Shown here: positions 5,019 through 54,776 of the stretch, piece by piece | Position numbering within the stretch: position 1 is the first letter of the stretch | Layout: each line of letters starts with the position of its first letter | Source of the DNA: Bugula neritina | Lineage: Eukaryota > Animalia > Bryozoa | Direction: 5' to 3' | Assembly (NCBI GenBank): GCA_964035545.1 | Contig: OZ037773.1 | Span: 3,191,751-3,255,750 of the forward strand | DNA: 64,000 nt | The notes under the pieces: generated by a model | Told to the model about the DNA's origin: nothing | The model's database searches: none | Seen by the model: the letters and a program-made list of their open reading frames with translations, nothing else | Translations under genes and position numbers: made by a program

Positions 5019-8000
5019 CTAGCTTTTGATGTTGACATAAGTTTGCCCGAAAGGTGCCTCATGGTTATCTGTATTGGCTGCTTGTCTTTGAGATGTATCT
5101 AGTGAGTCATAGTTGTGATCATCCATTCTAGTGGCAGACATCTCTGTGTATGGGGAGTTATCGGTCCTAGTAGTAGACATTTCTATGTATGGGGAATTAT
5201 CAGTCTTGGTGACAGACAACTCTGTGTACAGGGAGTTATCATTCCTAGTGACAGATAATTCCGTGTATGGGGAGTTATCAGTCCCAGTACGAGCTTGTGA
5301 CCTAATTCCTTGAAAAAAAAGACAAGCCAGTTTTATTTTGCAACTAATTTTTGGATTGCAGCTTCAAGTGTAATTGTTATATATAAATATGATAGAATAT
5401 CATTATTTTATAACATCATTTTATCAATCAATAACACCTTTTAGTTTTCCAAGATGAAATGCTACTCCAGCTGTGATGATAAGTAACAGACAACCACCAG
5501 CTAATCCTCCTCCCAGAGCAGCTTTGTCTATGTTCCCAGATGATGGTTTTTCAGAAGGAGTCAAAATCGGGATTGTGGTTGATAGTGTAATAGAACTATC
5601 CCACTTTATTGTCCATGTAATAGTAACTGATTTGGCTGCATAATAAAAGCAAAATTATTATAATAAAACGGATCTTTCAATAACACTATTAATAGTTTTT
5701 GACAATAAATAGTCTCTGATCATCACAATTAGTACCATATAGCTAGGTTAACTCTCTAATTTAAGTTGTATGACATTGTTATTAAAAGGAAAGTATCAAA
5801 ATTTAAAAAAGTGCATATATAAATTGTCAGCAGTGGTACAATTTAAATAATTTCTTACATAAACCATTTCCAGCTGCGCATGAAACTGTGTCTGTTAAAC
5901 CATCAGTTTGAGAATTCAAACCCAGTTCATCAGATGATCCTATTAGCAAAGCTCCATTATATGTCCAAGTGAAGGTTGAAAGTGGTGGGTTAGCATCCAC
6001 ATGTTGACTACACTTTAGTTTAACATCAGATTGACTTGGGTTGTATTCTTTCGTGATTGGATCTTGGACACCTGGTTTACTAGCCAAATCTGCAGTGCAC
6101 CAACATGAAAATGTTGAAATTAATAAGTATATCAGGCAATATATATATATATATATATATATATATATATATATATATATATATATATATATATATATAT
6201 ATATATATATATATTTATATATATATGAAAAGGAAAATTAATCCATATGTATTGAAAGAGAAAAGTTAATGACGCTCACACTGTGGTATAATGGTAACAG
6301 TTTGTTCAGTGTTTCCTCCCTTCCACTTAGAATGTTTTGTATCTGTACAAGATAAAGTTAGTCCAGTTCTGTCTGTCTCAGTAGGAGTATACTTTCCAGC
6401 CACTGTGTTACCATTTACTTCTGTACATTAATATATATGTGTAAGTCAAACATCAACATTGGTTATAGAAGAACATCAAAGAAAAAGTATTTGGTTCTAA
6501 GTTTACAACTTCCTCAACATAACGACATTATAGTATATGAGCCTAATATGTCACTATTACGTATATATATATATAAGCATTTACAAGATGACAACATTGT
6601 TCATCAGTGCTATATCCTATAATATACACCCATTTGTATTCTCAGCTTTCTGCTACATAAATAAAGAATCTAAAATCATGCATTAGTTTTATTCAGTAAG
6701 ATGGAATAAGTCAGAAAAACAAGTATGAATCCTATTTGCATATATATATATATATATATATATATATAGAACTATACTCACCGTATTCATAGACAGACAC
6801 AGGAACTGCCCCTATAGAGTTACAATTAAAACTAAACTCTTCTCCTTCTATGATAGTTTCTTGTACATTTAGAAATATATCAGTTGGAGCCGCTGTTGAA
6901 TGAAAATAAGACATGCAAAAATATATTTCAAGTTGAGGAGTCAAATAGAGTTTATAAGAGCACTTGCTAATACTTTAACTTAATGTCTTGGCTTATATGT
7001 GATATAGATAGGAAAAATATCAAGTGAGATAGAAGCATTCAAAACATTATACTTTTCTCCTTCTGTGATAGTTTCTGATTTCCTGAGGTTAATAAGCTGC
7101 AACCACTGTTTTAATAGGAACGCATTCATAAACTGAATATAAACATTTGGTTTACAGAAATATTTCCAATAAAGTTGTTTTACTCTCGCATTAAAGTTCC
7201 TAATTATGAACAATAATAGACAAAAATCTAACGATAGCATGGCACCATGCTAAATGTCTGAAAATAAAACTATAAACTGTTTTGATAGCAGTTGAATCCC
7301 ACAATATAGAGATAAATGACATACTTTAAAAGCTGAAATTAATTAAAGTTGCATCTAAAAATTATGGTCTGCTAACATAATTTTAAAATAGACAAATTTA
7401 CTTTAAATAGGTTACCTTTGACTTCCATTGACACTTCCGAAGAGAGAATTTCTCCCACACCTCCTCCTTCAAACCCTCTACAGTAAAACTTCCCTTTGAT
7501 TGTTGAATCTGTTACAGTGAGTTGTACAGAAAGAGTGAACCCTTCAGGTTTACCAACTGAGTTACAGTCTGCATGGCTGACTCCAGGTCCTTCTATTCCA
7601 GAAACAGTAATAATATCTGGAGTTGAAGAGCTCTGCCATACTGTGTCATCCTCAGCACTTCGAGTACATCCATTTTGATAGACTGTACTGTCTCCATCAG
7701 CTTCATACCGTAACTGAAAGGTTCTCAGATCAGTATAACCAGATGCTTCACATGTGAAAGTTATCTTCTCACCTTTATAGAAATCTGGTGAAGTTGTAGT
7801 ACTGTAGTCTATCTCTGTAGATGGCTGTGCTATATATAGATGTATATATAGTAACAGCCCAGGTTACAAAGTACATCTAATACCGTGTACCAATATATAT
7901 ACAGTCAAAAACGTCTGGTTGTAAAAAATTACTTAATGAATAATAACAAAAGTGCATACAAACTGCATATACCAAATTTTAAGAATATGAACCAATTGTA

Positions 8001-10000
8001 AACCAATTGCACTCCATTAAAGGACATGACAGTGAGAATAAAATATTTAACAAGCAGTCTTTACTTATTCCTACTTATTCATACTTATTCATATCTTAAC
8101 TTTTTCATATGAATGTTTATAACACTAACACTGTGGTGTGATGGCAACAGTTTGTTCAGTGTTTCCTCCCTTCCAGTTAGAATGTTCTGTATCTGTACAG
8201 GATAAAGTTAATCCAGCTCTGTCTGTCTCAGTAGGAGTATACTTACCAGCCACTGTGTTACCATTTACTTCTGAATATTAAAACATATCTGTTTTTGCCA
8301 AGTTATGATAGTAAAGAACAACAGAGGATCTGTTCCTATATGTTTATAAACTTATCAATATTACAACACAACCTCATAATTTTTATTATACTCCCATATA
8401 ATCCCATTATAGCAATATGACTTGTAAATTGCTATAAGCAATGCTCTGCCATTTACACAAAATTTTGAAACTTGCCAAAGAATTAAGTCTAAATTTGTAA
8501 AAATGACGACTCTAAAAACTTAACTCTTTTTTTAGAATAAGCTGACACCTAAAACTCTAGATTTACAAATAACTGCTTTAATTTTATAAAATAGAAAGTA
8601 TGGAAGATAATTACACTCATGTAGTATTATTAGATAATTGTATTTATATATGTCACAGTCACATACAAACGTAATTAATTTCATATTACATGTAGCAAAT
8701 ATTTTATGATTTTTACTATATGCAAAGAAAGGTAATTAATTTATAATTTACTAAATAGAAAGTCATGGAACACATGTTTGAATTTTAATTAATCAAACAC
8801 TTCTATATATACTCACTGTATTCATAGACTGACACAGGATCTGCTCCTGTAGAGTTACAATCAAAAGTAAACTCTTCTCCTTCTATAATAGTTTCTGGTT
8901 TATTGAGGGATATACCAGTCGGAGCCACTGTTGAATAAAATCGCAAATATTAATTTAAATTTAATGCATGCCTCCCAGAAATAAATGAGATATATATATT
9001 CCAAAATTTAATTTGAGGGTATAGAACTATATAGCAAAAATCAATGCTGACATTTTTAATTTCAGCCATGAAATTACACACATTAATTAGCTATGAAAGT
9101 GTCAAATATAACATTATTATAAAATGCTAAGCAGATAGTTTTGTTTAGAAACTAATAGTAATATACTCGAAAAATATTTATGGTGCATACTAAGTAAATT
9201 TTAGTGATGCCATCAACCATCACCATGGCAACAGATGAATAGAAGTTTAATCTGTGTTCTATAATATGGAGCTCTACTAAAGTTAGTTACAGTGAAACAA
9301 AAAAAACAACCAGTTATACCATAATAATTTCGAACTTATAGAATAATTTATTTTAAGAATTTACCTTTGACTTCAATTGAAACTTCTGAGGAAAGAAACT
9401 CTCCCACACCTCCTCCTTCAAATCCTCTACAGTAGAACTTCCCTTTGAGTGTTGAATCAGTTGCAGTGAATTGTACAGAAAGAGTGAATCCTTCAGGTTT
9501 ACCAACTGAGTTACAGTATGCATGACTGACTCCAGGTCCTTCTATTCCAGAGACAGTAACAATCTCTGGAGTTGAAGAGCTCAGCCATACTGTGTCATCC
9601 TCAGAACTTGGAATACATCCACTTTGATAGATTGTACTGTCTCCATCAGCTTCATATCGTAACTGTAAGGTTCTCAGATCAGTATAACTAGATGCTTCAC
9701 ATGTGAAAGTTATCTTCTCATCTTTATAGAAATCTGGTGAGCTTGTAGTACTGTAGTCTATCTTTGTAGATGGTTGTGCTATAAGAAAAATATATTACAT
9801 ATATAAAACTCTAAGATCCCCAATATGTACGTACTTTATGATACTGTGCACCAATATGTTATGCATGCAGTCCCTGAAGTCATGTGTATCAACCCAATTA
9901 CATATAATATAGTTACAGGGCATTATATAGAACAAGCCTTACCTGCAGTGCAGATAAATAAGCAGACCAGACAAGACAGGAAGTGGTAGTAGCACATCAT
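5019..10000 (-). CDS. Receptor gene A: Ig-superfamily type-I membrane protein, SP-V-C2-V-C2-C2-TM-tail with 4 Tyr repeats (~702 aa)
   Basis: Hand-built exons with GT/AG ends: 9943-10000 (signal peptide [19 protein letters not shown]), 9365-9778 (V-like: ITFTCEAS...FTLSVQ...GKFYCRG), 8817-8927 + 8130-8270 (split C2: [16 protein letters not shown]...LTLSC), 7416-7829, 6782-6892, 6280-6420, 5859-6089 ([21 protein letters not shown]), 5438-5635 (S/T stalk + [24 protein letters not shown]), 5019-5308 (tail). Lengths sum to 2109 nt, in frame, and I saw no internal stop. Confidence 0.85.
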
Positions 10001-54300: not shown

Positions 54301-54776
54301 ATTCCAGAGACAGTAGTAATATCTGGAGTTGATGAACTGATCCACACTGTGTCATCCTCAGAACTTGGAATACATCCACTTCTGTAGATTGTACTGTCTC
54401 CATCAGCTTCATATTGTAGCTGTACGTTTTTCAGATCATTATAACCAGATGCTTCACATGTGAAAGTTATCTTTTCATCTTTATAGAAATCTGGTGAAGC
54501 TGTAGTACTGTAGCCCATCACTGTAGATTGCTGTGCTGTAAATAAATTATAGCTGTCCAGTTTGTACAATACCTTTAAATTTAATACTGTTTACTGATAT
54601 TTGCAGTCATTATATAGTGCACATATATACGAATTATACATTATATCTAATCATTGTGATAATATATATTAACTATATGTAATTAAATATACAATTATTA
54701 TAGAACAATTGTTACCTGCAGTGTAGATAGATAAGCAGACCAAACAATACAGGAAGTGGTATTTATAGCACAACAT
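51310..54776 (-). CDS. Receptor gene F: minimal SP-V-C2-C2-TM-short tail form (~449 aa)
   Basis: Exons 54716-54776 ([20 protein letters not shown]), 54122-54535, 53195-53305, 52697-52837, 52345-52575, 51951-52154 ([25 protein letters not shown] then NKRKSK), 51310-51497 ([62 protein letters not shown]). Total 1350 nt, in frame. Confidence 0.85.

Follow-up and report, generated by a model that had tools for sequence, protein, structure and literature searches.

Tandem array of receptor genes on contig C9

The DNA analyzed here is a 64,000-nt window (C9:3191751-3255750) of the Bugula neritina genome, AT-rich (about 30% G+C) and eukaryotic, which contains six paralogous genes, A to F, for predicted membrane receptors built of immunoglobulin-like (Ig) domains. 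Direct-repeat analysis, tblastn with exon peptides, and exon homology placed all six copies on the minus strand throughout, and the array is therefore arranged head-to-tail. The signal-peptide (SP) exon of a seventh gene, of the A/D type, is located about 163 bp before window position 1, so that positions 1-4700 comprise the upstream region of this seventh gene and the 3' spacer of gene A. An earlier note on this DNA had claimed six copies and the upstream region of a seventh in head-to-tail order; repeats, exon homology, the SP exon outside the window, and the common strand verified both points, and its description of the cluster was confirmed as correct in nearly every detail. The spacing of roughly 10 kb given there applies to the full duplication unit, in which the gene and the entire 4.7-kb spacer together amount to about 10 kb, but not to the actual distances between copies, which range from 3 to 16 kb. 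From A to F, successive 3' ends (the lower coordinates in Table 1, for gene E about 48191) are separated by 9.8, 16.5, 6.2, 10.7, and 3.1 kb, and the 16.5-kb distance between B and C takes in a retroelement of about 5.4 kb.

Gene D was read base by base and its ten exons were projected onto the other copies. In the resulting model the exons follow each other in the order SP, V, first half of an Ig domain, second half of this Ig domain, V, again two Ig halves, C2, stalk plus transmembrane (TM) segment, and tail, and encode 708 aa in a coding sequence (CDS) of 2127 nt. All introns of gene D are GT-AG and all junctions are in phase 1, and the same is true for every intron in the spliced models of A, B, and F. 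The basic unit of the family consists of SP, V, a split Ig, a C2-like Ig, TM, and tail, and each intact gene has 3, 5, 5, or 6 Ig domains. The model of gene A is further supported by its tail motifs and by the hydrophobic character of its signal and TM segments. The spliced models of A, B, D, and F are open whereas C and E are broken, as the earlier note had proposed with four intact and two disabled copies, and its domain counts were also reproduced with three (F), five (A and D), and six (B); the count for B hinges on skipping a decayed TM-like exon, in which the translated hydrophobic stretch is cut short.

The two disabled genes are damaged in different ways. Gene C is devoid of an SP exon and a first V exon, and its V exon 34107-33697 has one in-frame stop (TAA) and a 3-nt deletion. 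Gene E has stops in both of its V exons, a frameshift near the end of the first, and no other exon types nearby. Outside the window, at C9:3157927-3161753 (L048:1931-5754), about nine V-type exons, some open and some with stops, are arranged head-to-tail with a period of about 490 bp; gene E is a two-unit version of such an array, which could encode a multi-V protein with mini-introns or could represent a satellite-like amplification of exons. Gene F possesses a TM exon and a tail of another kind than those of A-D. The TM type of A-D is limited to C9:3.08-3.23 Mb, with the exception of one distant, 48%-identical match on C1, and among the TM exons examined none had a charged TM residue of the kind that would indicate an activating-type partner. 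The disabled genes C and E and the retroelement in the B-C spacer are signs of birth and death in this array.

Table 1. Positions of receptor genes and related features within the window (exons from 5' to 3' of the gene; SP, signal peptide; TM, stalk plus transmembrane segment; TRF, Tandem Repeats Finder).
Feature	Window positions	Strand	Exons or content	Evidence
Gene A, intact, 708 aa, five Ig	5019..10018	minus	SP 10018-9943; V 9778-9365; Ig halves 8927-8817 + 8270-8130; V 7829-7416; Ig halves 6892-6782 + 6420-6280; C2 6089-5859; TM 5635-5438; tail 5308-5019	exon homology, GT-AG phase-1 junctions, open 2127-nt CDS
Gene B, intact as modelled, 837 aa, six Ig	14853..20469	minus	SP 20469-20394; V 20227-19814; Ig 19374-19264 + 18616-18476; C2 18368-18138; V 17369-16956; Ig 16756-16646 + 16349-16209; C2 16087-15857; TM 15631-15434; tail 15298-14853 (2 YxxL + 6 YxxM)	exon homology, phase-1 junctions
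Gene C, disabled, SP exon and first V exon absent	31311..35736	minus	Ig 35736-35626 + 35099-34959; partial V 34373-34177; V 34107-33697; Ig 33173-33063 + 32739-32599; C2 32503-32273; TM 32044-31847; tail 31717-31311 (2 YxxL + 5 YxxM)	exon homology
Gene D, intact, 708 aa	37482..42314	minus	SP 42314-42239; V 42117-41704; Ig 41265-41155 + 40610-40470; V 40176-39763; Ig 39236-39126 + 38799-38659; C2 38543-38313; TM 38088-37891; tail 37771-37482	base-by-base reading, ten-exon model
Gene E, disabled fragment	48191..49090	minus	V-type exons 49090-48706 and 48593-48191, about 500 bp apart	
Gene F, intact, 449 aa, basic 3-Ig unit	51310..54776	minus	SP 54776-54716; V 54535-54122; Ig 53305-53195 + 52837-52697; C2 52575-52345; TM 52154-51951; tail 51497-51310	exon homology
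Decayed stalk/TM-like exon inside gene B	17761..17916	minus		78.6% match to TM-exon positions 3-156
Reference V-set exon, gene D	41704..42117	minus	137 aa, used for structure model	
Coding 39-bp minisatellite, tail exon of gene B	14962..15278	minus	8.1 copies	TRF
Homologous 39-bp arrays	5131-5283 (A); 31420-31697 (C); about 37606-37746 (D)			

The duplicated unit contains further recurrent elements. A small minus-strand exon that ends in a peptide with four cysteines (CxxxC...CxC) is found at 3389-3538, 13116-13238, and 23615-23764; it lies downstream of A and B, at a distance of about 1.5 kb, and also, across the retroelement insertion, downstream of C. Its recurrence downstream of receptor genes indicates that it was co-duplicated with the receptor within the unit of about 10 kb. 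Long (AT)n and (TG)n microsatellites occupy fixed sites of the unit (17429-17726, 2560-2967, and 12257-12696), and the first of them, an (AT)n tract detected by TRF, separates the relic TM exon of gene B from the second V exon of this gene.

Ig domains and tyrosine-containing tails

When single exons of the window were compared to Pfam, the V exon gave no match, nor did the TM and tail exons, and in a set of 43 V members only 2-4 had matches to Ig_2, ig, or Ig_3, all below threshold. At the sequence level the V domain produced weak V-type matches only, among them JAM with an E value of 0.06. A first structure model made from 7 paralogues was poor, with a predicted local distance difference test (pLDDT) of 57, and was superseded by a model based on 43 sequences (the 7 paralogues, 20 divergent exons from elsewhere in the genome, and 16 outside open reading frames, ORFs), which reached a pLDDT of 94.6 and a predicted template modelling score (pTM) of 0.89. 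The predicted fold is a nine-strand beta sandwich that includes the C' and C'' strands and superposes on known V domains. All Foldseek neighbours of this model in the PDB were V domains, the VIA matches were likewise V domains, and the matches in the ESM Atlas that aligned over the largest number of residues were VHH and MPZL3 V-set clusters. Among the 43 sequences Cys26, of strand B, is invariant and Cys116, in an F-strand motif FYC, is at least 90% conserved, and a second conserved cysteine pair is formed by Cys54/Cys88. The canonical tryptophan of strand C was not found in the V domain; a near-invariant Leu39 lies in the modelled C strand (residues 34-43) and apparently takes its place, although no residue-level alignment to V domains was inspected for this assignment. 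The conserved Trp64 sits in C''.

The C2 exon showed a sub-threshold match to Pfam Ig_3 (E 2e-4) and matched Ig domains of the PDB with E values of 0.003-0.06; nectin-1 domain 3 (E 0.003) was the best sequence match, and together with CD22 and zig-4 it covers the range E 0.003-0.05. In the case of the split Ig domain, cysteine spacing and a 'YEYxVNG' C-strand pattern are as in small Ig domains. Local hhalign comparisons among the three domain types gave no usable signal because the domain profiles are shallow. In the V-C2-C2 layout proposed by the earlier note, the V domain thus stands by predicted structure but not by Pfam, and the two other domains are of C2 type by weak sequence matches. 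Similarly, domain 1 of the Alr proteins from Hydractinia is a V-set domain according to its predicted structure and is missed by Pfam (PMC9546547).

Tails of the A type are composed of 13-residue units, in which the tyrosine is invariant (35 of 35 units) and the residue at position +3 is always leucine or methionine. Two YxxL units are followed by a variable number of YxxM units, by DHNY[DN]SL, and by a unique end with YVNI, and this order is kept in five genes. The tails of the array as a whole end in ...YVNI[KR]S or ...ITSTSM. The YxxM block is encoded by a 39-bp minisatellite, and the number of YxxM units is two in A and D, five in C and in the upstream seventh gene, and six in B. YxxM is a site for the SH2 domains of p85 of PI3K, and YxN is a site for Grb2. 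At C1:28.01 Mb, the genome codes for a p85 iSH2 domain.

The earlier note had likened these proteins to receptors whose tails carry inhibitory motifs of the immunoreceptor tyrosine-based type (ITIMs), and the YxxL units match the ITIM consensus [ILVS]xYxx[ILV], with SPYTEL and S[LQ]YTEL in A, B, and D, SPYAEL and SLYTEL in C, and STYKEL in F. However, most of the tyrosines reside in YxxM (PI3K-type) units, and the YxxL pair also fits the immunoreceptor tyrosine-based activation motif (ITAM). As the units are 13 residues long, the pair conforms to Yxx[LI]-x9-Yxx[LI] and so falls within the ITAM definition Yxx[LI]-x(6-9)-Yxx[LI] (PMC9546547). Genes A, B, and D match it with YTEL-x9-YTEL, gene C with YAEL-x9-YTEL, and gene F with YKEL-x9-YECI. 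All of them use a spacing of 9, beyond the 6-8 of a stricter definition, and the pair is therefore ITAM-like only. A net signal of either sign, activating or inhibitory, would be compatible with the sequence. The tails of gene F and of the neighbouring 3-Ig gene Y are otherwise only about 35% identical and yet the core YxxL-x9-Yxx[LI] is kept in both, and its survival in such dissimilar tails is the best evidence that the YxxL-x9-YxxI core is functional.

Family distribution and mosaic evolution

When the 216,009,554-bp assembly was searched (matches on contigs C1-C9), the V profile detected at least 78 V-type matches, most of them in three blocks of C9 (0.03-1.09, 3.07-3.25, and 4.13-4.21 Mb) and small groups on C1, C2, and C4. 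The order V, split Ig, C2 and the intron that splits the domain are kept in members on other contigs that are only 30-60% identical. Among 1.84 billion representative proteins, the same profile gave 29 matches. The strong ones were unnamed short single-exon ORFs from Bugula-associated samples, in agreement with the lineage-specific, possibly unnamed family that the earlier note had postulated, and two of the four weak long matches, when looked up, proved to be a Wolbachia ankyrin protein and a cluster without a name. This search returned no Alr-type protein; the Alr sequences themselves were not compared directly. A divergent relative carries the annotation of a hypothetical, 'Ig-like domain-containing' protein of Bugula neritina, and a homologue search returned nothing when started from P0034, the sole annotated relative of full length (hypothetical, from Bugula neritina, 793 aa, with many V-like domains). 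In the papers found, the family was not described, nor did the literature searches turn up a published gene family of Bryozoa for immune receptors or allorecognition.

Outside the genome, exon ORFs of JGI metagenome contigs come closest; these contigs are about 81-93% identical to the genome, even across a syntenic DnaJ gene, and are probably derived from a sibling lineage of the Bugula neritina species complex. The same exon structure is kept in this lineage, which is about 14% diverged. The DnaJ gene and an adjoining divergent V-domain gene (C9:210228-232893) are syntenic with one such Bugula-type contig (L002; 81-93% identity), and the DnaJ/V-gene segment is present twice in the genome, about 16 kb apart, which suggests a recent segmental duplication. 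An ENA contig (L025) with a 32%-identical V-like exon had no nucleotide match in the genome.

Comparison of paralogous exons gave a synonymous divergence (dS) of 0.1-0.3, with the nonsynonymous divergence (dN) below dS in nearly all pairs. Pairwise dN/dS was 0.42-0.62 for ectodomain exons and 0.53 for 14 independent pairs of 28 V exons. With dN/dS of about 0.5 and no segment above 1, positive selection is not demonstrated, and the coding sequence is under relaxed or mixed constraint. The most variable positions of the V domain are 55-58 and 65-69, in the C'-C'' region.

Along each gene, the closest paralogue switches every few hundred bases. Between A and D the exons are 89-93% identical and several flanking introns 94-99%, and no V exon has a partner above 92.3% identity while flanking introns reach 96-99%. 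Inside the V exons, shared tracts were found in 15 pairs at p<=0.01 compared to 3.8 expected by permutation, an excess of about four-fold. These patterns point to frequent gene conversion between paralogues from which the V exons, the least homogenised part of the genes, would be partly exempt. The second split Ig of gene A has its second half encoded in exon 6280-6420, for which the best match is the first-module exon type of gene B (94.3%), whereas the intron upstream of this exon is closely similar to that of gene D (98.8% by MAFFT; 90.5% over 346 columns by blastn), and the exon looks like an exon-sized conversion tract.

Immune-type recognition and other possible functions

From their sequences, the genes constitute a bryozoan-specific multigene family of predicted type I membrane receptors of the Ig superfamily, and we favour, with modest confidence, a function as immune-type recognition receptors. 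Expression, ligand binding, phosphorylation of the tail, signalling partners, and an immune role are what we infer for them. A module made of a divergent V-set domain, a small Ig split by a phase-1 intron and, in some cases, a C2-type Ig is present once or twice per gene. The modules are followed by a stalk, one TM helix, and, on the cytoplasmic side, a tail built of 13-residue tyrosine units. The family has grown through tandem duplication of the unit of about 10 kb, duplication of the V-Ig module inside genes, slippage of the 39-bp coding minisatellite, and exchange of segments between paralogues, with loss of copies by truncation and stop codons. The membrane-distal V domain would bind a non-self, microbial, or cell-surface ligand, and binding would cause phosphorylation of the tail tyrosines. 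Paired YxxL units may then recruit tandem-SH2 proteins (Syk/Shark-like or SHP-like), YxxM units may recruit PI3K p85, and the C-terminal YVNI a Grb2-type adaptor, in which case the strength of the signal might be set by the number of YxxM units.

Several observations weigh against an immune-type function or against the gene models on which it is built. Adhesion molecules and growth-factor docking proteins likewise carry tyrosine motifs of such a type. In all tests dN/dS was below 1, with a value of 0.60 for the stretch of greatest variability (residues 51-72), and the F-G loop, equivalent to complementarity-determining region 3, is nearly invariant, unlike in antigen receptors. The first half of the split Ig matches Pfam Ig_3 only weakly (E 0.04, sub-threshold). 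No RNA run was found that could give transcript support to the models, and when contigs of four runs were aligned to gene D, no GT-AG-compatible joints were seen, the contigs being fragmentary DNA whose differences on gene D are inseparable from cross-mapping between paralogues of 94-98% identity. Only exons of gene D are covered by two of these four runs, for which the simplest explanation is fragmentary assemblies in which multi-copy words were retained.

The general kind of system, clustered immune-type Ig receptors with tyrosine-motif tails, is already known. In Siglec/CD22, KIR/LILR, CEACAM1, SIRP, PECAM-1, and teleost NITRs, an ectodomain of V and/or C2 type is likewise joined to a TM segment and an [ILVS]xYxx[ILV] tail, and the clustered vertebrate receptors linked to ITIM or ITAM signalling share tandem arrangement, birth and death, and variable domain number with the bryozoan genes. 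In contrast to them, the bryozoan family showed no homology in the searches made, has V domains at internal as well as N-terminal positions, and carries YxxM units that outnumber the ITIM-like ones. Repeated pYxxM sites for the p85 SH2 domains, sometimes together with a YxN site for Grb2, are a feature of CD19, CD28/ICOS, DAP10, and IRS/Gab-type tails. Unlike those of such docking tails, the bryozoan sites are exact 13-aa tandem units encoded by a minisatellite in the receptor's own tail, and their number varies between neighbouring paralogues (2, 5, or 6). Unusual in this family are the intragenic V-Ig repeats, docking sites of PI3K type whose number is set by a minisatellite, and the exon-scale mosaicism. 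An N-terminal V-set domain that predicted structure reveals and Pfam misses is also found in the Alr proteins of Hydractinia, together with additional Ig-like domains, one TM segment, and ITAM/ITIM-type tails, and these proteins are encoded in a large, pseudogene-rich chromosomal cluster of a colonial marine invertebrate (PMC9546547). However, Hydractinia belongs to another phylum, and the bryozoan genes repeat the V-Ig module and have a tail that is a 13-aa tandem repeat dominated by YxxM; polymorphism and function are established for Alr1/Alr2 only.

A less probable but serious alternative is that the proteins are cell-adhesion or cell-identity molecules like nectin, JAM, or CAR. Between zooid cells, their V domains would then engage in homophilic binding or in the binding of sister paralogues, and their tails would couple adhesion to PI3K and Grb2 signalling, for the organisation of tissues and not for defence. 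Nectins share the V-C2-C2 layout that the basic unit shows in gene F, the best match of the C2 exon is nectin-1 domain 3, JAM is among the weak V matches, and the conserved F-G loop as well as dN/dS values below 1 would be in line with such a role. However, conserved adhesion families have orthologues across phyla, whereas none was detectable for the V domain and no orthology to nectin, nectin-like, or JAM proteins was found. Dozens of tandem paralogues, pseudogenes, and variable numbers of domains and motifs, that is, a massive lineage-specific expansion, also speak against adhesion, and the C-terminal PDZ-binding motif of nectins is absent because four further residues follow YV. That the array is largely non-functional, a decaying segmental duplication with frames open only through the youth of its copies, has very little to recommend it: two of the six copies are broken, transcript evidence is missing, and exchange between paralogues is frequent, but three frames of 708-837 aa and one of 449 aa are open with all splice sites intact despite a dS of 0.1-0.3, dN is smaller than dS in nearly all pairs, and the exon structure is kept both in the distant members on other contigs and in the sibling lineage.

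It is rather unlikely, though worth considering, that the genes are determinants of allorecognition or kin recognition like Alr1/Alr2, with highly polymorphic V domains that would bind matching alleles only and with the C9 clusters acting as a histocompatibility complex. The Alr-like features named above, among them the large pseudogene-rich cluster in a colonial animal (PMC9546547), would fit, as would the V exons being the least homogenised part of the genes, and PMC10078279 cites a report of kin recognition by larvae of a single Bugula neritina lineage (Keough 1984). In other populations, according to the same source, the kin-settlement result was not reproduced. In addition, dN/dS does not exceed 1 in any segment. 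B. neritina grows erect and does not fuse, so that fusion histocompatibility would serve no obvious need. As an equally doubtful extension, the three C9 blocks might constitute a recognition complex for kin or self, in which V diversity would be maintained by exemption from conversion and a length-variable minisatellite would set signal strength; if true, a third independent Ig-based system of histocompatibility type would join the vertebrate MHC-linked receptors and Hydractinia Alr.

With immune-type recognition as the favoured function, the array represents a first candidate family of such receptors for the almost unstudied phylum Bryozoa. It offers intact gene models, a V-set family that evades profiles, and tyrosine units whose number gives a simple read-out, and with these a route to asking how a colonial lophotrochozoan recognizes microbes, its vertically transmitted symbiont, and conspecifics. 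It adds a lophotrochozoan case to the Hydractinia-based argument that V-set domains are under-detected outside chordates, and the exon-scale mosaic is a test case for the escape of ligand-binding exons from homogenisation in multigene families.

Two further features of the window lie apart from the receptor exons. The spacer between B and C contains, at 24422-29826, a block of retroelement ORFs with inverted and partial copies. Pfam gave no match for these ORFs; by eye, one of them (704 aa) contains a reverse transcriptase-like YRDD motif and a C-terminal GIY-YIG-like motif, and the element looks Penelope-like. Near the end of the window a distinct four-cysteine exon is located on the plus strand (62361-62498).

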